Source: Octopus bimaculoides (Eukaryota). From it: a stretch of 64,000 nt of DNA. The stretch spans positions 5,070,134-5,134,133 of the forward strand of contig NC_068989.1 in assembly GCF_001194135.2 (NCBI RefSeq), in the 5' to 3' direction. The notes below the pieces were generated by a model. That model worked only from the letters and a program-made list of their open reading frames with translations. It was not told the origin of the DNA and made no database searches. This document shows positions 14,696-52,300 of this stretch, one piece after another. The position numbers were made by a program, and so were the translations under genes. Numbering within the stretch: position 1 is the stretch's first letter; each line of letters opens with the position of its first letter.

Positions 14696-15074
14696 CCCCA
14701 TTGAGGCCTCTTGGTCTCGAATCAAAAGACGGTTGAAGTATATCACTGGATCATTGGGCCATAATGAAATGGTCTCGAGTCGACGAATCTATGTATGGAG
14801 AAATGTTATGGATTTACGGCGAAGAAAAATTTCCAGAATTTCTCTATATTTCTCAAAAAACATTGCCGAAGTTTATCTCCTGCCTAAATTCCAATGGCGG
14901 AGGTTTCAGTTGTAAGAAACAAAATGAAAACTTTAATTTCACTTTGTGATATTACTGCGGGAAATTACTCTGAAAGAAACCTTTACAGAAAGGTGAGTAG
15001 ATTGATTACATATTTCTTTCATTATGTTATCGCAATTTTGTAAGATTTGACTTTTATTGTAATCAATGATCACT

Positions 15075-15614: not shown

Positions 15615-15624
15615 GTGCATATGC

Positions 15625-15830
15625 TTCGAAAATCCCTGGAACATTCCTCTTCTAATGGAGATGGCTTTGGTTTTTATGTGTCCCTCTTTCGTCTGGAGCT
15701 GTAGCACTGTCTGCCATTTATTCATAGAATGTTTTATATATTTTAGGATTATTGGTGCTACCTTGTTCATGGCCAGTGTTTCTTGGATCCCTGTTTGGGG
15801 AATAGTATCAAAAGCCTTTCTTTCGCTGCA
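15625..15830 (-). mobile_element. Non-LTR retrotransposon RT fragment (R4/Dong-NeSL-like)
   Basis: KAFDTIPQTGIQETLAMNKVAPIILKYIKHSMNKWQTVLQLQTKEGHIKTKAISIRRGMFQG contains the RT KAFD and RRG.FQG motifs. Confidence 0.8.
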
Positions 15831-17042
15831 GTTGGGATATTTTGGTCGGCTTCTGTGAACACGGCTAATTTCCCTTTCGGCAGAGAGAGATTCCGGGATT
15901 TTTTTTAGTTTGAATCTCATTCTGGAAGAGGCAACTACTTCGTCCAAATATTTCAGCTTTGATGTTGATTGAAAGAGAACTAAAAGAGACGCAGGTAAAC
16001 ATTCGTCTCAGTTATGGCATTATGACGTCATAGATATATTTGAAATCATAATCTAAATTCTAATGCAATATTCTCAATATCGCAAATGTTGACAGAAGAG
16101 CAGTAATTTCGAGGGAGGGGATTATTCGATTACATCGAACCTAATGATTAACTGGCATTTATTTCATTGACCCCCGAAAGGATGAAGGGCAAAGTCGACC
16201 TCAGCGGAATTAGAACTCAGAATGCAAAGGCCTGACCTAATGCCGCTAAGCATTTTCCCCCGGTATACTAAAGATTCTGTCAGCCATCGTCTTATTTAAT
16301 AAATCAACAAATCTTATTTCAGTAAAGACAATCAGATGGTGTAGGGGAGATAACTCAAACTAAAACGCAATCTGTCTATGATCGCCTCCCTTTGTTAACA
16401 GTTGCCAGAATGATTCTCCTTCAAAATTACGTTAAGAATGTCAGTGTGTGGAATACTCGGCCACATACAGTATTATGCACCGTATTGTTAGAGGAATTGA
16501 ACGAAAAACTGGGATTTTTTTCACTATGAGCCTTGTAGTTTCGAGTTCAATTCACCTTGGGCAGGTATCTTCTCTTACAACCTCGGGCCGGTCAATGACT
16601 TGTGAATAAATTTGATAAACGGAAACTCTGTGGATCCTCATCATGCATATTTGTATGTGCTCGCGCTTGTCCCTACTATCGCTTGACAACCGGTGTTGCT
16701 TTGTTGACACCCTCCCCCTAACTTAGCGGTTCGGCAAAAGATACCGATAAAATAAGTATCAAGCTTTAAAAAAGAAAAAAATTGAAAATACTGGTGCCGA
16801 TTTGCTCGACTGAACACTTCAAGTCGGTGCCCCAGCATGGTCGCAGTTCAATGACGGAAGCAACTAAAATGAGAGACGATAAATCAAAATTAATTGCTGG
16901 TAAAGGTACCGTATTTTGTTATGCAACCATGATATATCTACTCCCAAATATAGTAAAGCCTTGTAAGTTAATGTAGCGTCCCACCTGGATTAGCAGTGCT
17001 ATTCAATCACTGTTTAAAGTTATCTCTACAGACAAAGGAGTT

Positions 17043-20544: not shown

Positions 20545-23500
20545 CTGAAAAATAAGAAAGAGAAAATTGAGAATTACTCAAACAAAGGAAGAAGCAAACG
20601 TGCCTTGTACATATACAATTAGGGCCTCACATATGCATTATACAGTAGGGAGTTGAAAAACTTGAAAACCTCAACAAAGGACTTAAGAAGACATCTCCAA
20701 CTGTGGGGAAATTTTAAAATCTAAAAATAAAAGCAAACAGGCAAAGCAGCAAATAATTCAAATAAGTTTGATTAATGGTACATTATTTACATGATTTACA
20801 TTTGATGGATATTTGTCCTCATCTTTGTGGTTAAGACAACATTTTGGCTGATATATCCTCCAGCCTTCATCAGGTGTCTTGGGGGAAATTTTGAACTTGG
20901 GTTCTCATTCCTAAGGTATTTTTCGATATTGTTGTTGTTATTATTATTATTATTCAGATCACTGTCTGGAATCGAACTTGGAATCTTGGGGTTAGTAGCC
21001 CGCACTCTTAACCACTATGCCATATAGAACTTTGAATTATGGGTTGACATCTTTGGAAAATGCTGACAACTGAAGACTGGAGATAGTCGGGCGCTAAACC
21101 CTTTAGCATTCTGATTACTCTGTCAAATGTAATGCTTATTTATTCACATTGTTTTGAATTAATCAAGCATTATCTTGTAACTTTGAGATTTCAATAATGT
21201 GCTTGTATATTTTTAGAATGACATTGTAGGGTAGGTGTGAAGGGTCGGATGTGGCTGGTTTGAACATGAAACAGAATATTTGGGCCAGTTACAGCCAGGT
21301 TATATGCTAAAGGGTTAAAGCTAACAAGTGGAAGTAAGAGATACATTTTAGTCTTATTAATCTCTTTGTTACCATCGTTTCACTGAAATACATTGCTTTT
21401 ATTTCAATTAGCTTTTGGAAATAATGAAAAATTCAATTAAAATTTAATAGAATTTATTATGCTTAACTTTGGAATTTTGATGGAAGATTTAATTTAGATG
21501 ATTTTAAAACAGGAATTTTTTATCGTACAGCTAGGAGCAGTCTTGGACAGATAGATGTCAAAAGGTTAAACAACCTCTGCAAAGAATTTTCTATTCAGTT
21601 TAATTAAGTGCAATCAGTTTATTCACACACGTATATATTGCAGACACAAACTGGATGTGTCGCTTCCTCACCTCTATTAACAGAAGGTAGTTGCCATTTC
21701 TTTCCATGCTGGTCAACTCTGACAAGCACCATTTTTAGATAATTGTCTGGTTATCTAATATCCTCTGAGAAACTGATTGGTAACATCAGTTGAAATCACT
21801 CTAAAACACTGTGTACTTCAATATATATAAACACACACACACACACACTAACTCACAAATGGAAACACAAACACAGACAAGCAGTGAACCAGCATAGTCT
21901 TACCTGTAATGACTTAAAACACACAATTTTTTTTTCTGGTATTTAAGTTTAAATAATAGATTAATTAACTCAATTATCTAATTTAAAATCAAAAATTTGG
22001 GAAGAAAACAAAAGGAATTGCTAAAAGACAATATATATATATATATATACATACATTAAAATGAAAGAAAAAAAATTACAGAAAAGTTAAAGAACAAACA
22101 AACAAACAAGCAAGCAAAGAAAACAGTTGTTAAGACACAAAAATTAAATAAAATTGAAACAAAGAAATGAGCCAAAACACAAATATATAATTAACAAATT
22201 GATTAATTTTAATTATAAATTTGGATAACTTGAAATGCATCACAAAGTATTATATACATACACATGTATGTACGTACATATGCACACATACATACATGCA
22301 CGCATATATGAACACACATGCACACACATATATCATGAACTAACTTTTACTTTCTCAGATGCAGCACGGAATTTTGTCAGTGAACAGGTCACGGTTTCAA
22401 AGCGAAAATATTTTGACAAATTAAATTTAAATGTTGAAGTCAGTCTGACGGTTTTTGTGTGTTTCTTAAATGGCTTATAAACACCTTCCATGCTGCAATT
22501 GTTTTTTGTCTCAGCACACGATCTCAGATCAGGTCACTTGCTATGCAAGTACATCTCCATAATAATAAAATAATATAAATCAGAATTATACAATGGTACA
22601 GCAACAGCAACAACAATAACAACAACAACGGTACTGATGATCATAGTGAATACATCACAAGTGTATTTCCTTAATACTTGTTAGAGAGAAATCAGAACTA
22701 ATCCCATATAGATTTCCACACCATTTGTGATAGTTACAATATGTCACCAACCCACAATGACCACCACCACAGAAAGAATTACTTTGGTTCTGGGAGTGAA
22801 ACCGAGAGAACTGTTCATCAATGATAAATAATTAATTAAACATGCAACAGAAACCAGGTAACTGATTGGTTTAGTAACTACTGCTACTAGTAGTAATTAG
22901 TAACTATTACAACTGCTACTACTACTACTTGTAGCAGTTAGTGATGAATGATGATGATGATGATAGTGATGATAATTGTGGTGAAGGTGGTGCAATGGTA
23001 GAGACAACAACAGGAGTGAGTGATGATGATGATGATGATGATGATGATGCAGACAACTATGATGGTGAAGATGGCATCTATGATGGTGGTGGTGGTGGAG
23101 ATATCAAAGATGACGGTGAAGATGAGGGCGGTGGCAGTGATGATGGTGATGATGGAGACATTGAAGACGAAGGTGGTGAGATGACAATGATGATGGTGGT
23201 GGTGGTGGTGATGGTAGAGATGATGGCAACGAGGGCGGTGGCAGTGATGATGGTGAAGATGAGGCTTACTGTGGTGGTGAGATGACAATGATGAGGGTGG
23301 TGGTGATGGTGATGGTGGAAACATCAATAATGGGAGATGATGATGGTGATGATGATAAAGGTAATGAAGGGGTGCTGATAATGATGAGGGCACCATGTGA
23401 AAGAAGCTTATGAGAAGAAGAGTTGAAAGCATACAAGAGGAAACTGGGCCCCTCTATTAAGGTCCAAACAATTCATAAGGACAGTAATATGCTGTATTTC

Positions 23501-26500
23501 TAGACATAGCCAACCCATAATAGTATAGAAAGAAATATGGATATTATAACAATAATTATCGTAATGGATAACGAACTGGATGATAAAGACATTAAATAAC
23601 TGTGAAGGTGATTAGGATAATAATAATGGTGACGGTGCCAATGGTATTATTTAACTGATTCCACAAAGAGTTAGACATTCCAGAAGAGGTGTAGAAACCA
23701 ATAATTTCCTGAAGAGGATTTTGACGAGAGAGAATCATGCCAGACCAAGTTGCAAAGATGGAGAAAAGATGAGAGAGATGAGTTAGTTTGAGGTTAATAA
23801 GAATCCCTGTCAAGAGGCAGACATCCGTCTCAGATTGGTTAGACATGCTACATTCCAGAAAACAGAGAAAGAGGGGAGAGTGGAGGGACAGAAAGGGAGT
23901 GAGAAAGTAGAGAGAGTAGGAGGATGAAGTGAAATGTGAGAGAAAGAAAGAGCACATGGGAGAGAGAGAGAGAGAGAGGGAGTGAATGGGAGGGTAGAGA
24001 GGGTGAGAGAATGAAGAGGAGCAAAAGAATGAAAAAGTGGGGGGGGGGGACCAGAAAGAGATGGAAAGTGTGTGAGATAGAGAGGTAGGAGGGGAAAGAT
24101 AGAGATGTAGAGAAATGAGAGTGGTAGCTAAGAGAGGCAGAGACAAGGAGAATGGAATAGGGGAAGTAGTAACGAGGAAAAGAAGTGGGTGTGACTTAAT
24201 ATAAGGAAAGGCGATGAAAGCCAGAAAGGGGCAGGAGACGAAGGATGGAAAAGGAAAAGGAGACCAAAGATGGAAAAGGAGGAGAAGATCAAAGAGAAAA
24301 GGAGGAGACCAAAGATGGAAAAGGGGAGGAGACTAAAGATGGAAAGGGGGAGGAGACCAAAGATGGAAAAAGGGGAGGAGACCAAAGATGGAAAGGGGAG
24401 TAGAGGAAAAAGGGAAGAAAGAGGGGAAAGGAGGAAGAGGCAAAAGATGGAAAGAGGGGAGGAGACTAAGAGAAAGGGGAGGAGGTTAAAGAGGGAAAAG
24501 GAGAAGAGACAAAAGATGAGAAAAAGAGACATGAAGGATGGGAATCGGAGGGGGGAAGAAAGTTAGAAAAGGAGGAAAGAAGAGAGCCAGAAGTGCAAGG
24601 AATAAAAAGACAAATGTCCCAAAAAAAAAAAACAAAAAAAAACAGGGTAGATTGAAAAAGAAGAGAAAGAAGTGAAAAGATATGTAGAGTGGAAACTGAG
24701 CGAATGTGTTAGAGAGAGAGAAAGAAAGAGATAAATGGGATAATGTTCCAGTTAGTACTACCTTAAAGTCGAACTTGATGTTGAACAGTGGTCATCAGGG
24801 CTATTGAAGGTAGCCTTCTCCATGAGGTGTGTGCCACTGCATACACTAGGGATCTTCATAGATTGGGAGACAACATCAACATACACACGCACACAAACAA
24901 TGAGGGAGAGAGAGAGAGAAAAAAAAAAATGAAATTAAAGAATTATAAGATGAAGAAGTTTGTATGTAAAAAGACAGTGAAATGGTTAAGACATATTTGC
25001 ACTGAGAGATGAGAGTGGCCTTGTGGTCAAACAAGTAGCAAGAATTTCATAGGATATATGTGGGCAGTACACTTGATTCTACAGCTACACTCCTGTCCCA
25101 TTCTGGTTCACCTGGTGGCTTGGAATATGTACCATGTCTTTGAGGAATACACAAACAACTTATCTGGGGAAGAGATTATACTGGTCTACTAAGCACACCA
25201 ACTCATCAATAGTGTGATATAAGAGGAGTAAAGACCCCCTTCAGTCAAGAATGACCGTAGTATTGCATCTAGAAAGTTCCCCTCCAAGGCACAAGTCCGG
25301 GCAAGGTTGTTTATGGAAGACCAGCAGTCACCCATGCATACCAGCCTCCCCTCTCCATGCCACTGATGTTATCCAAGGGAAAGGCAAAGGGGCCNNNNNN
25401 NNNNCCCTCTCCATGCCACTGATGTTATACAAGGGAAAGGCAAAGGGGCCGATACAGCTTGGTACCAGTGACATCACAACTCATTTCTACAACAGAGTGA
25501 ACTGGAGCAACGTGAAATAAAGAGTCTTGCTCAAGAAAACAACACACAGCTCAGTCTGGGAATTGAACTCACTACCTCATGATTGTGAACTTGACCCCAA
25601 CCACTGAACCATGTGCCCTAAAAAGCCTAGTATATTGGTTTCAAATCTTGGTACAAGGCCAGGAATCGCCTATGTGATTACATTGATCCCAGGAAACTGA
25701 CCATGAAAAGACGAAAGGCAAAGCCGAGCTTGGCAGAATTCGAACTCAGAGCGTAAAGGCAGACAAAATGCCGCTAAACATTTTGCCTGGCCTGATAATG
25801 ATTCTGCCAACTTGCCATTTTAGTGGCCTAGTGTATTAACCACAGTCATTTTAACTATTCTTTAGTCCAGTATCAATTTGGATTGATCAAACCTATAATC
25901 AAAGGCATTCTAGCCATGATCATCCCATCTCAGTATAACCTGACAAAACATGTCCAGAACCTCTTTGTTCTATGTATCTTCCCATAACACTGCAGGGAAA
26001 TTTGGCTGTTTTTTCTAGCAGGTCAAGCAAGCAAATATGTACAGGCTTCTTTAGATTATTGTGTTTCTGGACTATGTTAGCTAATGAATGTGACTTAAAA
26101 ACTAATTTCCTTGTAAAGAAGACCTGAGTATATTACTGGTACAGATTCCTGATTAGGTAAACTGAAGAGGTGTAGAATTAGAAGTGCACAGACCATGAAT
26201 GGCATAAATGCACAACTTGCAGGCCATAGGCATCTTAAGCCCCCACACATTGGTCGTTCACACTAGCCTCTCCCTGGAGACACAGACTTCTAGATTCTGC
26301 CATTCAAAAAATAAACCAAAAGTCTCCGAAAGCATCTTAAATCAGCCAAGGAAGAATGCATAGTTGTTGACGTTGAACTAAAATTGAATTATGAAAGAGA
26401 GCTGGATTGCCAGAGAAATGGAAATGAATGAAAGAAAGTAGAATGGAAGGAAGACACACAGACAGACAGACGGATAGAAAAGAGAGTTAAATAATGAGAG

Positions 26501-34125: not shown

Positions 34126-34181
<56 letters not shown>

Positions 34182-34293
34182 NNNNNNNNNNNNNNNNNNN
34201 NNNNNNNNNNNNNNNNNNNNNNNNNNNNNNNNNNNNNNNNNNNNNNNNNNNNNNNNNNNNNNNNNNNNNNNNNNNNNNNNNNNNNNNNNNNNN

Positions 34294-34373
<80 letters not shown>

Positions 34374-34390
34374 AAGAGAGAGATAGAGAA

Positions 34391-34421
<31 letters not shown>

Positions 34422-37400
34422 AAGAGAGAGATTTAATTTATTGTCTGTGACCAGGTAGTGTTTGGGTTCAAATCAATATGTCTGCTGTTATACTACCATT
34501 CATCAATTTTAACCCCTTAGCATTTAATCTGGTCATATCTGGCCCTAAACATTCTATCTGGTTCATGTTAGGACTGATGAGATCCAACCTCTCACACCTA
34601 CCCCTCAATGTCATTCTAAAAATATACAAACACATCTTTGAAATCTTGAAGTTACAAGATTATGAACGATAAATAAGTGTTGCATTTGACAGAGTAATCT
34701 GAATGTTGAAGGGTTAAAGATACACAATAAATGGCCAGCTAGAATGCAGAGAGACAACAGTTAGGTGTGGAGGTGAGGAGACAGGATGCAATAATTATAT
34801 GAATAAATTAATTAAATCATCAATAAAAAGACCAAAGAAAAAAACCCCATAAAAATCAGAACCACATGAGTGAGTGCAAAGGTTAAAACAAGAAACGATT
34901 AGTCAGAAATCTCCAATATCAGTTCATGCCTTTTCAATGTTAACAACATGCTTTTGAAGTTTGCTAATTTATATAAGATTTTAACCATCACCTTGTTACA
35001 AAGAGCACAAAAGATACTATTTCCTACAAACAGAGCAGTGTGTGCTCCACAGCCATGCTTACAAATGACCTCCTGTTATTGTCAGTAAGAGTAAAGCTCT
35101 AATAATAAAAAGCACTGACAAACGATCTTTGGTCTGAACTGGCATATGAATCCTGGCTGCAATCGGTGCCAGAAAATGACCCTTTCAGATAATCAGTTCT
35201 GGCAAATGGCTCTTGATCAAAGTCAGTCCCAGCAAAAGATTTCTGGTCATAATCAGTCCCAGAATTAGACGTCTTGTCAACGTCTGTATCAGAATAAGAC
35301 CCCTGATTAACATCTGTACCGGAATTAGACTCCTGATCAACGTCTGTGCCAGAATTAGACCTGTTATCAATGTCTGTGCCAGAGTAAGACCCATCATCAA
35401 CGTCTGTGTCAGAGTAAGACCTCTGGTTAAGGTCTGTGCAAGAATTAGACCCCTGATCAACGTCGGTACCTGAATCAGACCCTTGATTAACGTCTGTACC
35501 AGAATAAGATCCCTGATCAACGTCTGTACCAGAATAAGATCCCTGATCAACGTCTGTACCTGAGTAAGATCCTTGATCAACGTCTATACCAGAATAAGAC
35601 CTGTCGTCAACGTCTGTACCAGAATAAGACCTGTCGTCAACGTCTGTACCAGAATAAGACCTGTCGTCAACGTCTGTACCAGAATAAGATCCCCGGTCAA
35701 CGTTTGTATCAGAATAAGACCCGTCGTCAACGTCTGTACCAGAGTAAGAGCTCTGGTTAATATCTGTGCCAGAATAAGACCCCCGATCAACGCCTGTACG
35801 TGAATAAGATCCCCGGTCAACGTCTGTATCAGAATAAGAACTCCGGTCAACGTCTGTGCCAGAATAAGATCCCTGGTCAACGTCTGTACCAGAATAAGAA
35901 CTCCGGTCAACGACTGTACCAGAATAAGATCCCTGGTCAACGTCTGTGCCAGAATAAGAACTCCGGTCAACGTCTGTGCCAGAATAAGATCCCTGGTCAA
36001 CGTCTGTACCAGAATAAGAACTCCGGTCAACGACTGTACCAGAATAAGAACTCCGGTCAACGTCTGTGCCAAAATAAGAACTCTGGTCAACGTCTGTGCC
36101 AAAATAAGAACTCCGGTCAACGTCTGTACCAGAATAAGATGCTCGGTCAACGTCTGTGCCAGAATAAGATTCCCGGTCAATGTCTGTACCAGAATAAGAT
36201 CCCTGGTCAACGTCTGTGCCAGAATAAGATCCCCGGTCAACGTCTGTACCAGAATAAGATCCCTGGTCAACGCTTGTACCAGAATAAGATCTCCGGTCAA
36301 CGTCTGTGCCAGAATAAGATCCCTGGTCAACGTCTGTACCAGAATAAGAACTCCGGTCAACGACCGTACCAGAATAAGAACTCTGGTCAACGTCTGTGCC
36401 AAAATAAGAACTCCGGTCAACGTCTGTACCAGAATAAGAACTCTGGTCAACGTCTGTACCAGAATAAGATCCCTGGTCAACGTCTGTACCAGAATAAGAT
36501 CCCTGGTCAACGTCTGTACCAGAATAAGAACTCCGGTCAACGACTGTACCAGAATAAGAACTCTGGTCAACGTCTGTGCCAAAATAAGAACTGCGGTCAA
36601 CGTCTGTACCAGAATAAGATCCCCGGTCAACGTCTGTACCAGAATAAGATCCCTGGTCAACGCTTGTACCAGAATAAGATCCCCGGTTAACGTCTGTACC
36701 AGAATAAGAACTCCGGTCAACGTCTGTGCCAGAATAAGATCCCCGGTCAACGTCTGTACCAGAATAAGAACTCCGGTCAACGACTGTACCAGAATAAGAA
36801 CTCTGGTCAACGTCTGTGCCAAAATAAGAATTCCGGTCAACGTCTGTACCAGAATAAGATCCCTGGTCAACGTCTGTACCAGAATAAGAACTCTGGTCAA
36901 CGTCTGTGCCAAAATAAGAACTCCGGTCAACGTCTGTACCAGAATAAGATCCCCGGTCAACGTCTGTACCAGAATAAGATCCCTGGTCAACGTCTGTACC
37001 AGAATAAGAACCCTGGTCAACGCTTGTACCAGAATAAGATCCCCGGTCAACGTCTGTACCAGAATAAGATGCTCGGTCAACGTCAGTACCAGAATAAGAA
37101 CTCTGGTCAACGACTGTACCAGAATAAGATCCCTGGTCAACGTCTGTACCAGAATAAGATCCCTGGTCAACGTCTGTACCAGAATAAGAACTCTGGTCAA
37201 CGTCTGTACCAGAATAAGATCCCTGGTCAACGTCTGTACCAAAATAAGATCCCTGGTCAACGACTGTACCAGAATAAGATCCCTGGTCAACGTCTGTACC
37301 AGAATATGTTCCCTGGTCAACGTCTGTACCAGAATAAGAACTCTGGTCAACGTCTGTACCAGAATAAGACCCCTGATTAACATCTGTACCAGAATACGAC

Positions 37401-40400
37401 CTCTGATGAATGTCTATAGCAGAGTAAGATCCTTCATCAACGCCTGTAGCAGAGTAAGATCTCCAATCAACATTGTTGCTAGAATAAGATCCCTGATTAA
37501 CGTCTGTACCAGAATAAGAACCCCAATCAACATTTTTACTAGAATTAGACCTCTGGTCATAATCAGTCCTAGCATGTGGCCTCTGGTCAAAGTCAGTCCC
37601 CAAATTGGATTTCTTGTCAAACTCTGTCTCAAATGATTCTGCCCCACTGAGAGATCCCTGCCCACTGCTCATTACAACAAACGACCTCTGGTCACCTTCT
37701 GTTCCAAAAACTGATGCCTGATCAAACTCTACTCCGGGAAAGGAGCCATGGTTGCCTTCTGTCCCAGCAAATGAATCTTGGTTATGTCTTTTTCCAACAA
37801 GTGACTCTGAGTCAACCTCAGTGCCACCAATGGACCCTGTCACAGCAGATGAGTCTTGATTGAAAGCTAACCTGGGAAATGAATTCATACTGAGGTGTGC
37901 CCTTGGAAAAACCTCACGAGATATATCTACTCTTACAGGTGACTCTTTTACATAGCCTGTTGCCCCAAACAAACACTGGGTGATGCTTGCCCTTGCAAGG
38001 GATGCTTCTACCCCATTTGTTCCAACAAGTGATTTAAAAGTATCGGTGGTTGCAGTATAAGAACCTTGAGGTGTGTATATCTTTGAGAGTGATTTGCTGG
38101 TAGTATTTTTCCCATCTGAAAACCAAGGTGTCTTCATTTGTTGTGGTAATGAGCCAAGCTCTGTTTCTTGTTGACCAAAATGACGGAATATTCGACAACA
38201 CCAAAGTCCTGATCAAAAAAAGGCAGAAGTATACAATACTGAAAAGTGGCAAGCTGACAGAACCTGTGTTGGACAAAATGCTTAGCTGCATTTCTTCTGG
38301 CACTCTGGCATTCTGAGTTCAAATCCTGCCACGGTCAACTTTGCCCTAAGTTCTTTCAAACTCAATAAAATAAAATACTAGTCAAGTACTGGGGAAGGAA
38401 GTGGGTGTTGACGAAATCAGCTTGCTGCCCCTGCCCTCAAAAACTGCTGGCCTTGAATCCTGCAAACAGACTAGCATACTGTTTAGGGGTACTGTTGCGA
38501 TCTTCGTCACATATAAACCACAGAAACCAGGTAACTAACCTGATGAATCCTGGGGCTCAAAAAAAAAAAAAAAAAAAAAAAAAAAGAAGCCCTAAACAAC
38601 TCAGTTGCGGAGGTGTAGGGCTTAGTGGTTAGGGTGTTATGCTCATGATTGTAAGATTGTTGTTTCAATTCCTGGACCAGGAGATGTATTGTGTTCTTGA
38701 GCAAGACACTTCATTTCACGTTGCTCCAGTCAACTCAGCTGGCCAAAATGAGTAACCTTGTGATGGATCGGTGTGCCACCCAGGGAGGAATGTGTGTGTG
38801 TATGTATGTGTGGCTGCTTGGGCAAACGACTTCTAATATAGCATCAGGCTGACCAAAGCCTAGAGATTGGATTTGGTAGAGAGAAGCCCATCATACATAT
38901 ATATATATATATATATACATACATATATGTTTGTGTGTTTGTATGTCTCTGTAACTTAGTGGTTTGGCAAAAGAGACTGATAGAATATGTACCAGGCTTC
39001 AAAAAAAAAAAAAAAGCAAAAAAATACTGGGGTCAATTCATTCAACTAAAAAAAATTCTTCCAGAAGAATGGGGGCAGTCAAATGACTGAAACATGTAAA
39101 AGATAAAAGATGGGTACTGAAAATTTGGCTACTACTTCTAGCAAGTCAAATGACCACGTAGAGGATTGGTTAATGGAAGCAATAGTAATTACTAAATAGC
39201 TACGCATACCTCTGCTGCACACCTCAAAAGAACCTCTTGCTGTTGTTGAAGAGGAACCTAGTGACTTTTTAGTGAATGTCATATATGCACAACATTTAAC
39301 TCTTTAACATTCAGATTACTGTCAAACGTAATGCTTATTTATTCACACTGTTTTGAATTAATCAGGTGAAGGTGTGTGGCTTGCTGGTTAGGGTATTCAG
39401 CTTACAACCATAAAATCATGGGTTCAATCCCCGGCGGTGCATTGTGTCCTTGACTAAGGACACTTTATTTCGCGTTGCTCCAGTCCACTCAGTTAGCAAA
39501 AATGAGATGTACCTGTAATTACAAAGGGTCAGCCTTGTCATATTCGGCATCATGCTGAATCTCCCTGGGAACTATGTTAAAGTTACATGTGTTTGTGGAG
39601 TGCTCAGCCACTTGCATATTAATTTCACAAGCAGGCTGTTCCGTTGATCAGATCAAATGGAACTTTCGTGTACTAGATTTTGAATTAATTATGTATTAAC
39701 TAGTAGCTTTGAAATTCTGATGATGTGATGGTTTATTTTTAGAGTGACATTGTCGGGTAGGTATGAGAGGCTGGATCTGACTTCTCATAAAACAAGTAGG
39801 TATGGCTGGTTTAAATGCCTGAAACCAATACATAACAATCACCTGGGGTGGTTTGAGTCCCATCACTGGCCTGTTTGCTCTATACTTTTTCAAACTGGTG
39901 ATTATAATACCTTATACAGTTTTGGTTTAATATTAGTGTAGGCATGGCTCTGTGGTAAGAAGTTTGCTTCCCAACTACATGATTTCATGTTCAGTTCCAC
40001 TGCACGGCACTTTGTGCGAGTGTATTCTACTACATGGCCCTCAACAGAGCCCACAGGTAACCACAACAAATACAAAACTTTGACAGGTCTGCAATTTTTG
40101 GCAACTGTCTATGTTCCTGAAATTGATTATTTGTTGGTTAGTCAAAGATCAGCTTTAACTAAGCAGACCTATAATCAAAGATATCCAGCCATGACCATCC
40201 CATCTTTTTGTTTTGTGTTTTCTACTGCAGTCATTGAGTAATTTAGGTTATGTTATCCAACATGTAGTCTATTATAATTATATTCACATATCACTGTATC
40301 CACCGGATCACTGGATGTTTGTTACACACCGCTAGTTACAATACACTTTCCTTGCATTGTTGTATCGTTCAAATGATGGTACCCCACTGGCTAAGCGGGC

Positions 40401-43400
40401 AAGCCAATGATCTCCCTGAATGGGACACTTACCTCTCACAGGGTTACCCATTTAAAGTCGAGTGGACTGGAGCAAGCTGAAATGAAGTGTTCTGCTCAAG
40501 AACACAATACACTGCTCAATCCTGGAACTGAACCCACAGTCACTAGACCATGAGTGCAACACCCTAACCACTAGGCTACACGCCTTCACATATCCACATC
40601 TAAGAATAGTAAACTGAATCCAGCACTTGACATTTTTCCTTATTTTACAGACTTCATAAGAATGAAAGACAAAGCCAACCTCTGATTTGAGCTCAAAAAT
40701 ATAAAGGGCCATTACTAAATACTTGGCTTGCTTACTATTTCTAACAGAAAAAGCATCCACATAGAAGTTCCTTGTTGATTTAATATTACTTCGTCTTTAT
40801 TGGTGGATATGTAAAAAAATAAAATAGGGAAAAAAAAAAAAAAAAACCATTGGTACTAGTTTTCTAGCTAAAGGAAGGGCAAAGTCAAATACTTTATCAT
40901 TCACACACACAAAGAGGGCCAGGTCTCTTGGGATTAGCATTCTGACACCATATGTAACTCCCTAGATTTGACATATCACAAAATATCAGTTAGAGAGAGG
41001 AAGAGGGAAGAAAGAAATAGGGAAAGACAGTGATGGGGAAAGAGGGGGGAGATTCAAACAGAAAGTTCGTTTTTGGTAGTGTTTCTGCTTTTATATAACC
41101 ATTTTTTTTTTTTAACGAATCTTTTTTCAAAGAATCTCCCTCTTTCCCTTCACATGCAAAACAACAGGGCAGGATAAACCATTTGCAGAAGAAAAACAAA
41201 TCTGGAAGATGCGAAGACAAAGGAGGTGGGGGAAGAGGAAGTTAAGTGTTCAAATTTGTGGCAAAAACAAAAACCACAGGCAACGACCATATTTTCATTT
41301 ATGTTGCAAACAGAAACAAAACACTACTACTACTACTACTAATACAAAACATCAAATAAAAACTAAAATCTTAAAGCAACTACAACAACAAGAACAAGCA
41401 GGGAAATTTACAAAGTAAACACAAGTAAAACATTTAACTCCATTTCTGAAGGCAGCTGAATATTAATTATGTCTCCCCCCTCTAATAGCTACAGAAACAT
41501 TCCTTCAGCCAACCCCACTAACAACAATAACAATAATTACTACACAATTTTAAACCCTGCATGGCCTTGCAGTTAAGAAGCTTTCTTGTCAGCCATCTGG
41601 TCTCCCAGGTTCAATCCTGCTGTGTGGTACCTTGGACAAGTGTGGCAAACTGGATGTTAAAATGATGAAGATAATTTATAGGTGCACGTGTGGCCTTTTG
41701 GTAAGAAGTATGCTTCCCAACCACAAGATTTGGGTTCAGCCAATAAGCTAATGCTTTTCTCTCCAATTTTAGCACAAGGCTAGCAGATTTGTAGGGACAA
41801 GGCAAGTCACTTACACTGACCTCAGTATTCGACCGATACTATATTTTATTGACTCCTAAAGGGATGAAAGGCAAAGTGGACCGCTTGGGATTTGAACTCA
41901 GAACATAAAATGCCAGATGAAATACTGCAGAGCACTTTGTCCGTGTTCGCAACTCTACCAGTTAGTTGCCTTAAACCAATAAAATAATAAACAGTAAAAT
42001 ATGTTTTAAAATTAGGGTCATCAGAGACATGCCTTACAGACCAATGTGATCAGGGATATATTCAATAGATCAATGTTACTCAACCAGTTTTTGCTTATCG
42101 ACCCCTTTGAATCCTGTTTTACTCTCCTGGATCCTCATTCCCATTTAATGTTTTAAAAAAGTCCCATTATGCTTTTATAATTAATCATTACTAGGAATTG
42201 TAATTTACATGTTTCAGCCCTAAGGCTGTAACTAATTTATTGGACATAAACAATTAACACCAAAACCTTATATGGAACCCCAAGGGTCATGTGGACCCTG
42301 GTTGAGAACCACTGCAATAAAGAAATCAGTGATACATAACTTTTTGCATCAGGTGGTTCATAAAATCCACAAAAAAATACTTCATAGATCACTGAATATA
42401 CATGAGATTATAATTGTATTATGGAAAAATGCAGGCCATAAAAACTTGCCATAGGTCACCATAACTTTGGTGTGGATCATGTTACGCAGCAGTGCAATAG
42501 ATCAATGCAGAAAAGGATGTGTACTAGACCAGAGCAGCAAGACACAGGATGTGTCTGCTCGCTCAATATGATCAGAGGCATGGTTAATAGTCCACTGTAG
42601 TGACAGAATGCTTGATAAGAAATGTATTAGCTTGACCAGTACGGTCAGACATTATTCTAGCCAGTCAATTTCTTGAGCTGTGCAGGTAGGTTAAGTATAT
42701 TTGTAAATCCAGATCAGTGGTTCTCAGCTGGGGTCGATGTAAGATTTTGTTGTTAAAATTTATGAGCAATAAACTTGTTATACTTCTACAATATGCAGAA
42801 TATCTTAACAATTTTTCTTTATACAATTCCTAATATTTAATTATGAAAATATAACATGATTTTTCAAAGCATCAAGTGACTATGGTGGCCCACTTCAATA
42901 AAGTAAGAATCAAAGGGAACCATAGGCAAAAATGGTTGAGAAGCACCGAGACAGATAAACCTGGATGTGGTTCACTGACCACACTCATTTACATCAAACA
43001 CTAAGCTACTCCTCGAAAACTTATGAATGGAAAAGTTTAACACAAAAAGCTGCTCAAAAAAAAAGAGAGTTAAATAAATCATAAAGGATGGAAAACGAAG
43101 AGAAAATATTTACATTAAAAACATTCAAATTGTCACAACAGAGGCAGGAAAAGCGACAATTACATCATCAACAGCGGCACAAGGGATTTTGGAGGAAAAG
43201 GCTTTATACATACATATATATATATATACACATACATATATGTATGTATGTATAATTGAGGTTGCATGCATCATGCTACTGGGATAAACACATGTGATGC
43301 AATCAAACCAAAGTCTTACCATCAACTTCATCAGAGCTCGGAGACCGATATTTGGCAGATGAGACATTATTTCTATGTACTCCTAAAGAGTAAAGAAATG

Positions 43401-44152
43401 CAATAATTCTTACACAAATAACAAAAATTTAGAAAAAAAAAAAAATAGTGAAAATACAGTTACTCATAGAATACATTTTCTTTCTCACAATCCAACAACA
43501 TTCTGCAAAGCCAACATTTTGAACAACTCACTTGTTAACAAATGTTTTCAATTAACCCTTCAAATACCAAAACTCTATTTTCTTTAACCAGCATCCCTGC
43601 CATTACATCTGTAAATTCACTCAGAAACTTTTCTCTCTTATTCAACACTTTTTGGAATTGGTTTGCAAAGTTCTTGATGTGAACTTGTGTATTGAAACAG
43701 ATTGTGTTGCCTCTCAGGAGGTTAATTATGTCATTACTAAACACACACACTGTTAGCATTTCACCATTATGAATTTATATTTCTCACACTGCTACTTAAA
43801 ATTTTAAATCATTAATGAGACACTAATTACTCAAAAAAAGAAATTTGATAACTTAATATCTTCCGCACTATTATTTATCTTATTTTTGTGTTTTACAAGA
43901 CATTACAATCAGTTGAACCTCCGATGTTTTTCAGAAGACATATTCTTTCATATACACATTCCCACTTAACACATGAGAGAGTCTATGCAGTTGCTTGATC
44001 TGCTAGAAACTCTCCTTCAAAATCAAGTGTCTTTGAAAAAGACACATTAAATGATGTGATCCTAGATGCACCATGCCTCCATCGGCATCAGTAAAGGTTG
44101 AGGTAGTCAGAGTTGCAATACTTTTAATAATGAGATCAGCTCAATTGGGACT

Positions 44153-44206
<54 letters not shown>

Positions 44207-46344
44207 TCTTTTATTTGTTTCAGTCATTTGACTGCGGCCGTGCTGGAGCACCACATTTAGTCAAACAAATCAACCGCAGGACTTTCTTTGTAAGCCTAGT
44301 ACTTATTCTATCGGCCTCTTTTGCCGAATTACTAAAATTCACACAAAAGATTTTGGTCAGCCTGAGGCTATAGTAGAAGACACTTGCCCAAGGTGCCATG
44401 CAGTGGGACTGAACCCAGAACCATGTGGTTGGTAAGCAAGCTACTTACCACACACACACACACACTCTTATATGTAATATATATATATAAGAGAGAGAGA
44501 GAAATCTGTTTTCCAACCATGTGGGCTTTGGGGTCATTCTTCAGAAGGGGCATTCTGGTCAAGTATGTTCTACTACAACCTGAGCAGACCAAAGCTTTGT
44601 GGAGTGGATTTGCTCGATGGAAGCTGAAAGAAACCTGACAGTCAACCAATTGTGGTCGTAAGTCAACGCCAACCTGTATTCCTCAGCTAGAATCATTGTC
44701 TGCGACAAAGCTGGATCTTTTGAATTACAGGTACAATCCATCAGATGAGCTTCCTTACAGTTTCCATCTTCCCAATTTCATTCGGATGGTTTGGGTTGAT
44801 CCAAGGTTATGGTAAAAAAAAAACACTTGTCCAAGACGCCATGCAGTGGGATTGAACCTGAGATCTTATGATTGCAAACTGAACTTCTTAACCATTCAGC
44901 CATGCTACCTACAACAGCAAACTACCACTAACTGCACCAGCTGACCAAGAGTTAGGGTTGGGCTGTAATTTCACAAATCAACCGGAAAGAAAGGAGTGGA
45001 AATGTCCATGACCTGTTCAGACCCTCCAAGATGAATGGGACCGATATATCTTATATGAAGCCTGTGAATATCTAACAATCAATAGATGCAAAAAGGGGGG
45101 AAAAAACCACTTGTGAGTGAAGAGAACTGGGACAGAGGGGTGGGTGGGGTGGAGGTGTCAGAGACTCTGACAGGGTCAGCTGCACTTAAAAACATCCTGA
45201 CGGAACTTGTGACAGGCAGAGCTGTTAATCTTTAAAGTAGCTAAAACAGCCACCTGCTAAACAAATGCTTTTTTATAGTATTCATCATCGTCATGTAACG
45301 TCCACCTTTCCATGCCCACATGGGGCAGATAGAATTTGAGATAAATTTTCCATGAACGGATACTCTTCCTCACCCATTGCATGGTAAGTAGCTTGCTTCC
45401 CAACCACATGGTTCTGGGTTCAGTCCCACTGCATGGCACCTTGGGCCAGTGTCTTCTACTATAGCTTTGGGCCGACCAAAGCCTTGTGAGTGGATTTGGT
45501 AGACGAAAACTGAAAGAAGCCCGTCATATATATGTGAGTGTATATCTTTTATTATTTACTTGTTTCAGTCATTTGACTGCAGCCATGCTGGAGCAACACC
45601 TTGAAGGGTTTTAGTTGAATGAACTGAGCTTGGTATTTATTCAATTAATCTCTTTTGCTGAACTGCTAAGTTACAGGAACATAAACAAACCAACATTGGT
45701 TTTCTAACAGTAGTAGGGGCAAAAACAAATACACCCACACACACACATAATGGGCTTCTTTCAGTTTTCTTCCACCAAATCCACTCACAAGGCTTTGGTT
45801 GGCCCAGGGTTATAATAAAAGACACTTGGCCATGGTTCCATGTAGTGGGACTAAATACAAGACCACATGGTTGGGAAACAGGCCTCCTGACCATGCAGTT
45901 ATGCCTCCACTGTCTACTGTAACCATCTTTATCTAAAACTGTAGGGTGGGATTTAAATGATATCTGACTGCTATTTCTAGTACATCAAGTGACTACCATA
46001 CAACTGCTTCACAGAGTTAGCATACAACCTTTTCTAAATTTTCAAGGCAGTCCAAATCGTGACCATCCAGTCTTGTTGCACTCTGAAAACTACATTAGCC
46101 AATGTATTTCTTCAATTTTATTTTAAACCAGAAAGATGACTTTTGAGGGTGTTGTGTGTGCTATTTCTAGCCGGTCTAGCAATCATGTAGAGGATACCTC
46201 ATTTATTTGTCTGTTATGAATGTTGTGTGTCACAGTGTTATGCAATATCATAAGGGTGTGTGTCTGTGAGGGGAGGGGCATGATGGAGAGGATATTGTCG
46301 AAAAGGTAGGGTAGGTATTCATATGCATGTATACGTAATTGCAT

Positions 46345-46376
<32 letters not shown>

Positions 46377-49300
46377 GAAGAGTCAGCTGGCGTTTTTCTT
46401 TTGTTCAACATGAATAAATAATCGAAAGAGATAAAGTAAAATTGAATATCAATTGAGCATCTAGTAACAGCTGTGGGTGATAGTGGGAGAAGATAGGACA
46501 ACAGGCAAACCCAATTTCCCCCCTCCCACCTCCACCACTAATACTATCACCACTACTACCACCATCACCATTATAAAAATGGTGTTGGGCTGTTGAAAAA
46601 GAAAAATTGTTATCATGATTTTAATGTCTACTTTTTCATGCCTGCATGGGTCAGGGGACGGTTTTCTAGAGTGGAGTTTTCTATGATCAGATGCCATTCC
46701 TGATGCCAATCTTCATTTGTTTCCAAGCAAGGCAATAACCAACCAGTCTATTGACCAACAAACAGTTCAGACATGGTTGCGTTGAGAACAAGAACCAAAT
46801 GGACTTGTCAGTAAGACCATTGTTTACCATCAGCCAACACATGTAAAGATGAAGAAGATACGAATCCATTCACTCACACACATACACCACTTTTCCATGC
46901 TTGCATGGGTTGGACAATTTACTGAGGCAGATTTTTCTTCAGCTGAATGCTCTTCCTGTCACCAACCCTCATCTGTTTCCAAAGTAATACTTCCTCACGG
47001 GCAGACAATTCTCTACAGATGATTAGATGATTGGAAATGAAAGACATTCATTTACATCAAGCTCATGATATTCAGGAGATGCAAACATATACACACTAAT
47101 GCACAGTTATATACACACATATATACATATATGACAAGCAGTTACTTTTAGCTTCCAGCAATCAATTTCACTTGCAAGGTTTTGGTTGGCTTGGTGCTCT
47201 CATTGAAGACCCTTGCCCAAGTTTCCACACAGTGGGACAGAACTTGAAACAATGTGGTTGGAAAACAAACTTGTTAACCATATGGTCATATCTATACTTT
47301 GTCTGGGTTTCATATGTTCGTTACACAAAATAATAATAATAATAATAATGCTCTGATGCAGTACCAGGCAGTGGCTCTTGATTGGAAGTGTTATCATGTA
47401 CATTGTTTTGTCCTGGTATAAAAGATGGAATACAACAAATATTCTGCTCAATACCACAGATTTGCTTGTCAGTTGTTTGACCTTAACCATTTGAGCATGT
47501 CCCTTGGTGGCTGACGATATGTGCATCTCTGATCATGAGCAGAAGTAGTGGGGGAGCATCATAGCCATGTGTTGAAAGGAATTCTTTGGGGTTTGGATAA
47601 TTCGCCTTTGGAAACATGAGTGTTTCGTTCAACATCCTCAAACAATCCTTATTTAGGGACCTTTTGAGCATATGGGCTACTTGACCCGAAGAAAATTCTA
47701 ACTGGGTACCACCTGCAAGGTCATGTGCTGTTATAACCTATAGGCCTACTCAAAATACAAGTGTATGTATATGCTTTATGAGATATGTAGACCGTAATCA
47801 CTTAATTATGTGAAGAGAAGTCAGAGGTGCCAAAAGTAGAGGAGTTTCGACTTCACAGCCCTGGGTCAAAATGCTTAGTGTTATTTCATCCGTCTTTAAG
47901 GTTTGAATTCAAGTCCTGCCAAGGTCAATTTTGCCTTTCATACTTTTGGGATTGATAAAATAAGGACCAGTTGAGCACAAGGGCCAGTGTACTTGATTTA
48001 TTCCCACCCACAAATTTTCCATTGTCTTTTAAAGAATTTTGAAAACTAAAATTTAGAGGGATTTAGTAAACCAAGTAACTTATTTTTTTGTTTGGTTGGA
48101 GTTTGAACACTCTAGTAAAAGGCTTCATAACTTAGCATTAATTATCTCTTATATAAATATTGATAGAAGCTTCTAATTGAGGCCCTTTACTCCTAAATAC
48201 ATGACCATCATCATTTTAACATTCATTCTTCCATTCTGACATGGAGTGAAGGGGGTGGGTTACAGTAAATTGATGTTTAGCTGGGTTGTGCATAAGTGTA
48301 TCTGTGTGTATGTGTGAGCATGAATGTGCATAAATGTGTTTTGTGTGTGTATGTGTATGTTGTTTAATCCTGATCCAGAAGGTGTTTGGTTAAAGGCTTT
48401 CCAGCTATGACCATCCATTCTAATTTTTAGACAGTCTACTGTAACTATGTTATCCAAATTGCTCTTCTTTTATGATGATATGATACGATATGAAGGTGGT
48501 TTACTTGTATTTCTAGCAAAATGAAGCAACCATGCAGAGTCCCCTCATTAACTCTGTGATGTGATTGTTTGTGTGTAAATATACTCTCTTCCATAGATCT
48601 AGATTAACTCCTTGTTTAAAACCCTACAACTGTTAGTTATATCATAGATACACGCACACAAAGGTACAAGCACTCACATATACACAAACACATACAGGCA
48701 AGTGCACACACACACATCTTAAAAATTACTTACTTTCGTGATGGTCTGAGCTCTGTCCTGTTATTCTCCACTGGGTCAAGGAGCCTACAAGGAAACAGAA
48801 AGGCCAGCAACCGAGAATCAGCCAGCTGTACCAACAGGGAGGATCAGAATCCTCCACTTTGATACACTCCCACACATAGTTCACGATCAGGAATTTTTCT
48901 ATAAAATAGTCCAGGCAAATTGCCATCAAGGCGGCACCAAAGACGCTTGTACCGACAATGGTGCCTGCCTTTTGGAACTTGAGAGTCAGCAGCGCAAATA
49001 AAATACCAACACCAATGAGAACGCCGATTGGTATCCATTTGTTGGCAATGTTATAGAACTGGTCCACAGTGACCAACACTCCGGTCGAGAGACCGACGCC
49101 AAAGTGGAATCCGGTCAGAAAAAGTCCAACATACTGGACCAACATGGTAATTAGTCCGCAGATTATGCCGGCACCCACTGCAATGCCAATGTTTGCCTCT
49201 TTCGGCAATACTGTCTCTTCTATACAAACTATATATACAACCACTGTGCCAAAGATGAAACCAGTTAAGAACATGACAGCCTTGAAGAATCGGTAACCTG

Positions 49301-52300
49301 AAAGTAAAAGACAAAAAATATTTGTGGGTTTAAAGTATACATGTAACATGGTTATACATACATAAATAATCAGCATCAATTAATGTTCAGTCTTCCATGC
49401 TTGCATGGGTCAGACAGAATTTGTTGAGGTAGATATTCTATGGTTGGGTGCCCTTCCTATCACCAACCCTCACCTGTTTCCAAGCAAGGAAATGTTTTTT
49501 CATAGCAACACATTTTCCATAGAGGACTGGAAATGGACATCCGTGATTGCATGAGGGCGATGCTTCTTTTTACAACCATCAACTGATGTCAAGACAAGGG
49601 CAGACACAATCTACCTACCTATGACAAGCTTTCTATTTCTATCATTCAAGTCCTCTCACAAGGCTTTGAGGTTATAGCAGAAGGCACTTGGCCTCTTCTT
49701 ATTTCTTTACTGCCCACAAGGGGCTGCACACAGAAAGGACAGACAAACGGATTAAGTCGATTATATCGACCCCATTGCATAACTGGTACTTATTTAATCG
49801 ACCCCGAAAGGATGAAAGGCAAAGTCGACCTCAGCGGAATTTGAACTCAGAACGTAGCGGCAGGCAAAATACCGCTAAGCGTTTTGCCTGGCGTGCTAAT
49901 GTTTCTTCCAGCTCGCCGCCTTTCTAGGTGCCTCTTGGTGGGACTGAACCTGGGACCACATGCTTGGGTAGTACACACTCATACCTGCACATATGGCGTG
50001 TGTGTGTGTGTGTGTGTGCATATGGAGAGAGAGACCTTGTTTACTATAATTACTCACAAAAACACATGACGGCAACCAAAGACTAAACTAATCCTTAATT
50101 TAAAAGAAAAGGTTTTATCTCTAAAAGATAAGTCTAATAATGCAAAATATTATAATCCCAAGACTTCAGAGCTTAGAGACAAAAGACCAAACAAGGTAAT
50201 GAAGAAAATAGGCAGGTGTACTTGAGTTTATTTCTATGAAGGTCTCAATTTGAAAGCTGTTAAGTTTCATGTTGAATAAGAATAAAAAGGGGTTGATTAC
50301 TTAAACACAGATTTGTTAGAACAAAGCTATAAGAACATTATATATAATTATGCGATGATATAATATGGTATGCTAAGAAGCAAGGAGAAGCGAGTTAGTA
50401 ATGCGTTAAACTAGGTTAAATTCTGTACAGCATGGTAAAATTTAAGGTTAAGAAGGCCTGGAGCATTTTCAGGCTGTTCACCAATAACATCTATGTATTT
50501 CAAAACAATTACATGAGCCATTGAAGAAATGTTTATGAGGTCAGTAAACTTGCTAGAAATAGCAGCTAAATTTCCCTCGAATTACACCCAGCTGTTTAAA
50601 AAAAAAAAGGTTATATAAAATAATGATGCCTTAGATAAATTACGATATTTGATGGTGTATAAAATGTCTCGAAAATTCACTCAGACAAAGGGATTAAGTC
50701 GATTACATCGACCCCAGTGCGTAACTGCACTTAATTTATCGATCCCGAAAGGATGAAAGGCAAAGTCGACCTTGGCAGAATTTGAATGTTGGGGAGGATT
50801 AAGTTGATTACATCGATCCCAGTGCATAACTGGTACTTATTTAATCAACCCCGAAAGGATGAAAGGCAAAGTCGACCTCGGCAGAATTTGAACTCAGAAT
50901 GTAAAGATGGACGAAATACCACTAAGCATTTCACCCAGCGTGCTAACAATTCTGCTAATTCATCACCTTGAAAATAATAATAATAATAGCACCTTGGGCA
51001 GGTGTCTTCTGTCATAGCCCCAAACTGACGAAAGCTTTCTCAGTGGATTTGGTAGGGAGAAACTGAAAGAATACTCTCGTGTGTGTGTGTGTCCTCGTCT
51101 CAACACTGCGTGATTGTTGTAAAATGGTTGTCAACTGTTATTCAAAGCAGCATCATTCATTTGCAGTATTCTGGAAAAGCATGTCTGGCCATGGGAAAAT
51201 ATTACCTTGCTTGGAAACAATTTTCAGCCGTAGAAAATCTGTCTCAATAAATTCTCTCTGACCCATGTAAGCATGGACAAGTGGACATTAATGTGATAAT
51301 GATGATGGTAGATTCAAGAGGAAATGAAACGAAAAGTCAACCCAAGAGCTATTTGAACTTGAAGAAACTCAATTTAAAATGGAAGTCCACAAGATGCCCC
51401 TCCCTGTCACCAGCCCTCACCTGTTTCCAAGCAAGGTAATATTTCCCATAGAACAATGGGAATGAACACCTTCACTTGTATGACAATGATACTTGTTTAC
51501 AACCACCATGTGATATCAAGACAAAGGTATACACACACACACAGATGGTGGCTTTTTTCACTTTCATCAAGCAAATCTGCTCGCAAGGAAGTGATCGACC
51601 CAGGGCTATGGCAGAAGACACGAGCCCAAAGTGCCATGCAGTGGGACTGAACCCGGAACCATTTGGTTGGGAAGCAAGCTTCTCAACTGTACAGCCTCAT
51701 CTTTACTTAAAATTGAGGAATAAAATCTGCAGGCAGAGTTTTGACTTACAGACAACGCCTTTGTGTTTGGGTGAGTCTGTATTATTGCTCCAGGAGATCT
51801 TCTGTAGAGCAAGTTCTATTGTATCCCCTTTTTGTAGGGGTTGATGGTGAAGAAGGATCAAGTGATCCAAGGGAGATGTAGAAAGCAGTGATGAAGGCTG
51901 ATATCGAGATAAAAGGAGCTCAAGGAGAAGATGACAAAGGATTGCAACGAATCTCAAAATCCTGTGGTGGAGGATATCTGCCGTACCCATGGGTAAACGG
52001 ACATAAAATTATAGTGACGGTGGTAATGATGATGGAAGATAAGTAAAATAGGGGTGGGGGTGCATGCACAAGGTATAAGAATGAATCAGCTAGGGAAATG
52101 GAAAGCAGTGAGAACGGAAGCTTAAGACCAAAAACTCAAACCAAAGCAGAATGCGTGTGAGAGAGGGCATAGGGGGGAAAGAGAGAGTAAGAGAGAGGGT
52201 GAGAGTGTAAGAGAAAGAGAGAGATAACAAAAGGGAATGAGAGAGAGAGAGAGAGAGAGACAACAAGAAAGAGACAGAGCAAAGGAAAGAGAAAGAGAGA

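Follow-up and report, generated by a model that had tools for sequence, protein, structure and literature searches.

The TMEM198 gene and the open frame in its second intron

We analyzed a 64,000-nucleotide stretch of the Octopus bimaculoides genome (RefSeq assembly GCF_001194135.2, contig NC_068989.1, positions 5,070,134 to 5,134,133), referred to here as the window and numbered from its first letter. The window carries the gene TMEM198 on its minus strand and, inside the second intron of that gene, a long open reading frame (ORF) made up largely of a decapeptide repeat. An earlier inspection of the letters, hereafter the sequence-only reading, had proposed that this ORF is a hidden alternative last exon of TMEM198. 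To place the exons of the gene, we used tblastn with the best database relative, the Sepia pharaonis protein P0001, and blastn with its transcript contigs, of which L001 served for exon 1. Coding exon 1 (52590 to 52386) starts at ATG 52590 and ends in a phase 1 donor, G/gtaagt. Exon 2 (49297 to 48734, 564 nt) runs from phase 1 to phase 1, ends in ...SSDHHE followed by the donor A/gtaagt, and accounts for six of the seven membrane spans predicted for the protein. Its translation matched the Pfam family PF13886, TM7S3_TM198 (E = 2.6e-36, 125.6 bits against a cut-off of 29.2), which confirmed the identity of the gene. Blast and in-silico splicing located canonical exon 3 (30247 to 30117; ILQNKRSRK...RFNGDVISQ) and the coding part of canonical exon 4 (20544 to 20425; NYIQSIQHKL...TLTQVS and the stop). 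The four-exon canonical product is 339 amino acids (aa) long after in-silico splicing.

Exon 2 is 85% identical to Sepia pharaonis in amino acids and 74% in nucleotides. The Sepia pharaonis protein aligns with exon 3 at 86% and with exon 4 at 97.5%, including the conserved C-terminal tail YRHLYQVRRFNGDVISQNYIQS..., and the junctions of both exons match transcript L001. All three coding exon junctions are common to the window and the cuttlefish TMEM198 transcripts (Logan contigs L001 to L004). The contig from run SRR3011300 comes from Sepia pharaonis, this run being one of four that carry P0001 and a transcriptome of that species (PMC5541922). The ORF called in L001 to L004 begins at a Met inside exon 1 (283 aa), with >290–630 nt of sequence upstream. 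With the same exon junctions and the RFNGDV/YIQS tail, exons 1 to 4 represent a clear orthologue within the TMEM198/TM7S3_TM198 family. PMC8473786 describes TMEM198 as a seven-span scaffold for casein kinase 1-gamma (CK1-gamma) and LRP6, and the reported casein kinase and LRP6 role cited in the sequence-only reading holds.

The ORF lies on the same strand as the gene, within the 18.5-kb intron 2. One minus-strand frame is free of stops from 38212 to 35102 (3111 nt), opened by a TGA at 38215–38213 and closed by a TAG at 35101–35099. An ORF listing of the window, stretches of N excluded, showed this to be the longest stop-free stretch by far. The coordinates and sequence strings given for the ORF in the sequence-only reading, and the product lengths of 339 and 1292 aa, all proved correct when the sequence was read out and spliced in silico.

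When the translation was written in rows of ten residues, about 100 decapeptide units became visible. Tandem Repeats Finder (TRF) reported a 30-bp unit from 35276 to 37559 in 76 copies with 85% matches and 0% indels. Self-BLAST of 34716–38270 revealed no dispersed repeat from elsewhere in the window besides the array itself, in line with the statement of the sequence-only reading that the 3.1 kb has no transposable element (TE). Units at the center are near-identical copies of SYSGTDVDQG with Q/R and G/S variants, and on both sides of the center they become progressively diverged (SNSGTDVNQG, SFAGTDFDQE, PFARTDYLKG, SFAGTEGNHG, SVFGTEGDQR). Hidden Markov models (HMMs) built from the units at the DNA and protein levels detected repeat ancestry only from about 37825 to 35131, with weak traces just beyond the stop, and the protein HMM detected the repeat in the frame of the ORF alone.

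From these results, the ORF could be divided into four parts. The first is a unique leader of 127 codons (38208 to 37826; R-LWCCRIFRHFGQQETELGSLPQQMKTPWF...), which contains ATG 38137 and has no decamer homology above noise with nhmmer or the protein HMM. It is followed by degenerate 5' units of the form S-[FYL]-x-G-T-[DE]-x-D-Q-x (37825 to 37414), which were identified from the unit table and HMMs and are open in the ORF frame only. The third part is the homogenized core (37413 to 35587), with about 61 units of 30 bp and the consensus TCTTATTCTGGTACAGACGTTGACCAGGGA, encoding SYSGTDVDQG (TRF, ORF lists and unit table). Degenerate 3' units and the C-terminus (35586 to 35102; ...SFSGTDCSQDSYASSDQRSFVSAFYY) complete the ORF and are again open in its frame only. 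The sequence-only reading had spoken of hundreds of bases of non-homogenized sequence before the array. This was right, although just ~380 nt of it (38208–37826) are unique and the remainder (37825–37414) is degenerate decamer repeat.

Several further properties of the array were recorded. The main polymorphism among core units is at unit position 9, CAG (Gln) versus CGG (Arg), and the CpG-containing GACGTT is kept. The observed/expected ratio of CpG is 0.72 in the ORF compared with 0.51 in the window and 0.21 in the leader, and the young array has therefore not yet lost its CpGs. No clear higher-order periodicity was found in the core. Past the TAG, two more degenerate units continue in the same frame (SFTLTDNNRR and SFVSMAVEHT; 35098–35039), which remains open until a stop at 35023–35021. 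This region gave a weak nhmmer match (35087–35054, E = 0.019) and contains a GTAAGC donor-like site at ~35062. Because units continue in frame past the TAG, the array was formerly longer, and today's stop originated within one of the old units.

Coding constraint on the repeat peptide

The core array (~35587–37413) is also open in a second frame of the same strand and in plus-strand frames. Thus, the openness of the core is uninformative about coding, and the leader and diverged flanks are the informative parts. The multiple open frames on both strands would be explained if a stop-free 30-bp unit had expanded as an untranslated minisatellite, or if the array were a decaying exon, so that the ORF and the acceptor at its start (see below) would be coincidental or the relic of an exon. 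Across ~1.3 kb of diverged sequence, however, just one of the six frames stays open. The leader (38212–37829, 384 nt) has no stop in the ORF frame, compared with 8 and 2 in the other two frames (shuffle P = 6e-4), and only 0.65% of equal-length intronic windows elsewhere on the strand are stop-free. We also simulated neutral decay of 23 diverged units, starting from the consensus and applying the number of changes observed in each unit together with the transition bias. On average 5.1 stops were expected, and the probability of observing none was 0.005. An open leader jointly with stop-free diverged units is very improbable if the array was never translated.

The substitutions themselves gave a second line of evidence. 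We estimated the ratio of nonsynonymous to synonymous substitution rates (dN/dS) by the Nei-Gojobori method, in tests that compare paralogous repeat units within one genome, not orthologues. Relative to the consensus, dN/dS of the 3' flank units (35586–35102) was 0.25 in the ORF frame and 1.05 and 1.53 in the control frames. The 5' flank units tested (~37391–37609) gave 0.34 in the ORF frame and 0.59 and 1.19 in the control frames. When all pairs of units were compared, dN/dS was 0.31 in the ORF frame and 0.64–1.25 in the control frames. Further, 156 of 230 residues in the diverged units have remained consensus, whereas random placement of the same substitutions left 128±4.6 and at most 146 in 20,000 trials. 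Retention of amino acids is therefore ~6 standard deviations (SD) above random placement.

The core gave a dN/dS of ~0.8, a value that recent expansion would produce. This value, together with the two degenerate units that lie in frame past the TAG, also counts in favor of an untranslated or decaying array. Nevertheless, substitutions that spare amino acids, with ratios of 0.25–0.34 in the ORF frame against ~0.6–1.5 in the control frames, are not what such an array should accumulate, and we regard that alternative as improbable. The constraint on the peptide is shown by these comparisons. We conclude that the ORF is, with high probability, protein-coding and that purifying selection appears to have acted on its peptide throughout the lifetime of the older units.

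A candidate splice junction with exon 2

The sequence-only reading had pointed to a splice acceptor at the opening of the frame. The string cttctgcctttttttgatcag/GA CTT TGG TGT TGT is present, with its AG at 38210–38209, four to six bases inside the opening TGA. The candidate 3' splice site (38229 to 38209) consists of a polypyrimidine tract and CAG. To assess its quality, we scored every minus-strand AG with an acceptor position weight matrix (PWM) that takes in the tract of pyrimidines between −20 and −5 as well as C/T at −3 and G at +1. The candidate scored 7.5 bits, which is the 99.67th percentile (top 0.33%) of 3324 minus-strand AGs in 62 kb. An equal or higher score was reached by 11 of the 3324, three of them being the true TMEM198 acceptors, and within intron 2 only 3 of 1080 AGs scored as high. 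The genuine TMEM198 acceptors scored 9.0, 10.2 and 8.8 bits. By this in-silico measure, the candidate acceptor appears about comparable to the three in use.

A ~120-bp SINE-like element (SINE, short interspersed nuclear element) is dispersed in the window in both orientations, with 68–79% identity between copies (38271–38394, ~13204–13318, 16158–16256, 41820–41942, 50818–50931, 60626–60697 and others). The copy at 38271–38394 ends ~40–60 nt upstream of the candidate acceptor. We considered a TE-derived acceptor, as in Alu-like exonization, and rejected it, because the SINE copy ends at ~38243–38271 and the pyrimidine tract lies outside it.

If the acceptor is used, an upstream donor must supply the preceding exon. 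The exon 2 donor at 48734 (...CAC GAA A/gtaagt) is strong and of phase 1, and introns 1 and 2 are both phase 1. The acceptor at 38208 is likewise of phase 1 and the frame is continuous across the junction, as the sequence-only reading had claimed. Joining 48734 to 38208 in silico gave ...SSDHHE-R-LWCCRIFRHFGQQ..., a predicted product of 1292 aa instead of the canonical 339 aa, with the predicted junction peptide …SSDHHERLWCCR…. Between 38213 and 48733 we found no further plausible coding exon and no feature resembling an upstream exon or a promoter; most of this interval is made up of SINE copies and simple repeats, and its short ORFs lack coding character. The exon 2 donor is the sole recognized upstream donor on the minus strand. 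The quality of the acceptor and the match in phase are shown by the sequence, and from them we infer use of the acceptor at 38208 and its pairing with the donor at 48734.

The same ORF could instead belong to an independent gene nested in the intron. Such a gene would have its own transcript, which would either be a single exon translated from ATG 38137 (1012 aa) or begin at an unrecognized first exon or promoter in intron 2 and be spliced into 38208. Large invertebrate genomes commonly contain orphan repeat genes. The coding constraint is equally strong under a nested gene, the ORF has no homology to TMEM198 tails, and the opening stop precedes ATG 38137 by 25 codons. The 25 open codons before this ATG are not significant alone, since by our own arithmetic from window composition they would occur by chance with a probability of ~0.18. 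A single-exon gene, however, should not have a top-0.33% acceptor at its frame opening; 76 nt separate the opening TGA from ATG 38137, and the chance that they contain an acceptor this good is ~0.9%. The high-scoring acceptor at this position therefore favors an exon over a single-exon gene from ATG 38137, and the context of that ATG is weak (C at −3, A at +4). A spliced nested gene is confronted by the lack of any upstream exon or promoter candidate in 38213–48733. In addition, the spliceosome would presumably hardly ignore an acceptor on the same strand behind a strong host donor. On balance, we consider a nested gene less likely than an alternative last exon, though it is the most serious of the alternatives. 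It is the position, strand and phase of the ORF, along with the lack of another donor, that lead us to the alternative last exon.

We also asked whether the exon could be an internal cassette that is spliced on to exon 3. There is no good phase 1 donor before the TAG: the GTAAG-type sites at ~37936 and ~37951 are phase 0, and the one at ~35062 comes after the stop. For this reason, a cassette exon continuing into exon 3 is unlikely. The two donor-like sequences in the unique leader are GTAAGA and GTAAAA (37931–37936 and ~37946–37951, minus strand). If used, they would shorten the exon to ~270 nt and break the frame with exon 3, which may represent a poison-exon route or chance.

A terminal exon would need its own 3' end. 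The AATAAA named in the sequence-only reading is present on the minus strand at 34442–34437, ~660 nt past the stop, and a second candidate, ATTAAA, is found at 34528–34523. Both are putative poly(A) signals. Next to them, at 34129–34431, (TG)n and then (GA)n form a compound microsatellite that is broken by a 112-N assembly gap (34182–34293).

Other features of the window lie farther from the ORF. In intron 3, a ~1.6-kb low-complexity block (22938–24566) has long ORFs on both strands of up to 184 aa. Their translations are His/Pro/Ser-rich and Asp/Gly-rich, and the block looks like a simple-sequence expansion rather than a gene. Downstream of TMEM198, a 96-aa minus-strand ORF (15073–15360) matched the hAT-family C-terminal dimerization domain PF05699 above its cut-off (E = 2.8e-5) and is a transposase remnant. 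The adjoining 120-aa ORF (15588–15947) had no Pfam match. No Rfam family matched in the window.

The predicted tail, its relatives and its meaning

The repeat tail predicted from the junction is 1036 residues long, compared with 83 residues for the canonical tail (basic/RFNGDV/YIQS). It is composed of 20% Ser, 15.5% Asp, 13% Gly, 9% Thr, 9% Val and 8% Tyr, so that 37% of residues are Ser, Thr or Tyr, and it is strongly acidic (177 D+E versus 63 K+R). Hydrophobic residues recur at every fifth position (Y2 and V7), as in the pentapeptide-repeat beta-helix and Decapeptide families (PF13599 and PF25296), to which Pfam gave weak matches (E = 2e-4 and 2.7e-9). These matches fell below the gathering cut-offs, at 21.8 bits versus 38 and 37.2 versus 45. 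We ran AlphaFold2 on 200 repeat residues with an alignment of in-register segments. The model has a periodic pattern of short strands at very low confidence (predicted local distance difference test [pLDDT] 34, predicted template modeling score [pTM] 0.28). Neither the Pfam scores nor the pLDDT supports membership in either family, and we rejected a pentapeptide-repeat beta-helix for want of support. Most likely, the repeat tail is disordered; no known fold or family was found for it. The unconfident prediction and the sub-threshold Pfam matches are also what an untranslated or decaying array would give.

S/T-x-x-D is a CK2-type consensus, and an acidic residue at −3 is a CK1-type consensus. 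In each unit, Asp is found three residues after S3 and three after T5 (S/T-x-x-D), and the preceding unit places an Asp at −3 of S1. Judging from these motifs, the tail may serve acidophilic kinases (CK1 or CK2) as a phospho-scaffold with many sites. The sequence-only reading went further and suggested palmitoylation of a Cys-Cys pair, an either/or tail switch and a consequence for Wnt signaling, all of which we treat as speculation.

We searched for relatives of the ORF in several collections. Against 1.84 billion representatives, the full ORF gave 3020 matches, all of them on the repeat part and none on the leader. Those inspected were unrelated period-10 repeat proteins with 11–46% identity and different motifs or flanking domains, and we therefore rejected them as homologues. 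The most similar motif (P0209) is within a C2H2 zinc-finger protein at an unrelated locus, and the top match (P0098) is encoded in an ENA assembly as one ORF of 4012 aa. Many database proteins thus carry analogous period-10 arrays, and the likeness is one of periodicity and composition only, not homology. Exact look-ups of the 1012-aa ORF and of the exon 2 ORF returned no record. Among 97 TMEM198 matches retrieved, none had a repeat tail, and the tail of the ORF had no similarity to any TMEM198 sequence. A literature search found no paper linking TMEM198 with cephalopods and none containing the repeat peptide.

Several of our results weigh against an alternative last exon of TMEM198. First, a search of 5.8 billion clustered proteins returned no homologue for the 240-residue N-terminal part of the ORF, scanning the JGI metagenome contigs with the leader gave no match, and neither tail nor leader has a homologue in the 5.8 billion clusters, the 1.84 billion representatives or the JGI contigs. 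The lack of homologues in the databases searched also counts for an untranslated or decaying array. The collections searched do not include this species, the best TMEM198 match being 85% identical, and so the missing matches say nothing about its expression. Second, the four transcriptome contigs (L001 to L004; Sepia pharaonis for SRR3011300) carry the canonical tail only. With only the canonical tail in cuttlefish and no homologues elsewhere, the exon, if real, would be young and restricted to the lineage of the window. Third, the acceptor PWM is crude and generic, drawn from general knowledge and not species-trained; the phase match by itself is a 1-in-3 event; and ATG 38137 is only 25 codons into the frame, which makes a single-exon reading possible. 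Fourth, directly past the AATAAA come a microsatellite, (TC)n, and then the assembly gap at 34182–34293. The 3' end of the transcript would consequently fall in poorly assembled sequence and is uncertain. Finally, the copy number of a 2.3-kb array of 30-bp units may be wrong in a gapped assembly.

The state of the assembly raises a further alternative, in which the array is an artefact of collapsed or mis-joined repeats. Short reads struggle with a 2.3-kb array of 85–88% identical 30-bp units. The 64 kb contain nine N gaps, and one of these lies ~800 nt past the stop codon of the ORF. The informative evidence, however, comes from the leader, the diverged flanks and the acceptor, which are outside the collapsible core. 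We consider an artefact of this kind, or the cassette exon discussed above, to be very improbable.

Taken together, we tentatively favor 38208–35099 on the minus strand as an alternative last exon of TMEM198, which is the best single explanation of the sequence even though our confidence in it stops short of even. Under this proposal, 38208–35099 would be a translated, lineage-restricted coding exon grown from a 30-bp minisatellite encoding SYSGTDVDQG. It would begin with a unique leader of 127 codons, and its repeat would consist of a recently homogenized core flanked on either side by older, diverged units. The exon would be entered by splicing at the 38208 acceptor, and the likeliest partner is the phase 1 donor at 48734. 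It would serve as an alternative 3'-terminal exon with intronic polyadenylation, in competition with splicing of the same donor to the rival acceptor of exon 3 at 30247. The product would keep the seven-span TMEM198 core and exchange its 83-residue tail for a 1036-residue, presumably cytoplasmic, tail.

The components of this proposal are of known kinds. Alternative last exons with intronic polyadenylation, of the skipped terminal exon type, are found in calcitonin/CGRP and in many receptor C-tail switches. Like these, the candidate is an intronic exon with its own acceptor, an in-phase ORF, a stop and AATAAA/ATTAAA, and it would rival the canonical acceptor for one donor. Unlike typical alternative tails, its coding part is ~3.1 kb, which is far larger, and nearly all tandem repeat, and its usage is predicted from sequence. 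Coding minisatellites are likewise familiar from the 10-residue repeats of primate involucrin and the variable number tandem repeats (VNTRs) of mucins. The array resembles them in its 30-bp unit and period-10 peptide, its homogenized center with older diverged margins, and length change that is only in frame. Within the TMEM198 family, the window gene differs from all 97 retrieved relatives in being the only one with a candidate repeat tail.

Should the junction be absent, the ORF would still count as an orphan repeat gene that is under constraint and sits inside an intron, a finding of modest interest. There is also a practical warning for annotation, as ORF callers would give a single-exon orphan and the ORF would be hidden by repeat maskers. 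The locus also provides a coding signature that can be measured within a single genome, through the comparison of old with young repeat units. If the junction is real, it would be a clean case of de novo exon birth from a minisatellite. We can then envision, as a possibility held more loosely than the exon itself, an innovation of the octopod lineage in which TMEM198, a seven-span scaffold of the Wnt pathway, gained a minisatellite-born terminal exon whose acidic tail may function as a membrane-anchored phospho-scaffold or kinase sink. A real junction would mean lineage-specific rewiring of the cytoplasmic tail in a protein that is otherwise conserved from arthropods to vertebrates, and the tail concerned is that of a scaffold that reportedly recruits CK1 to LRP6.

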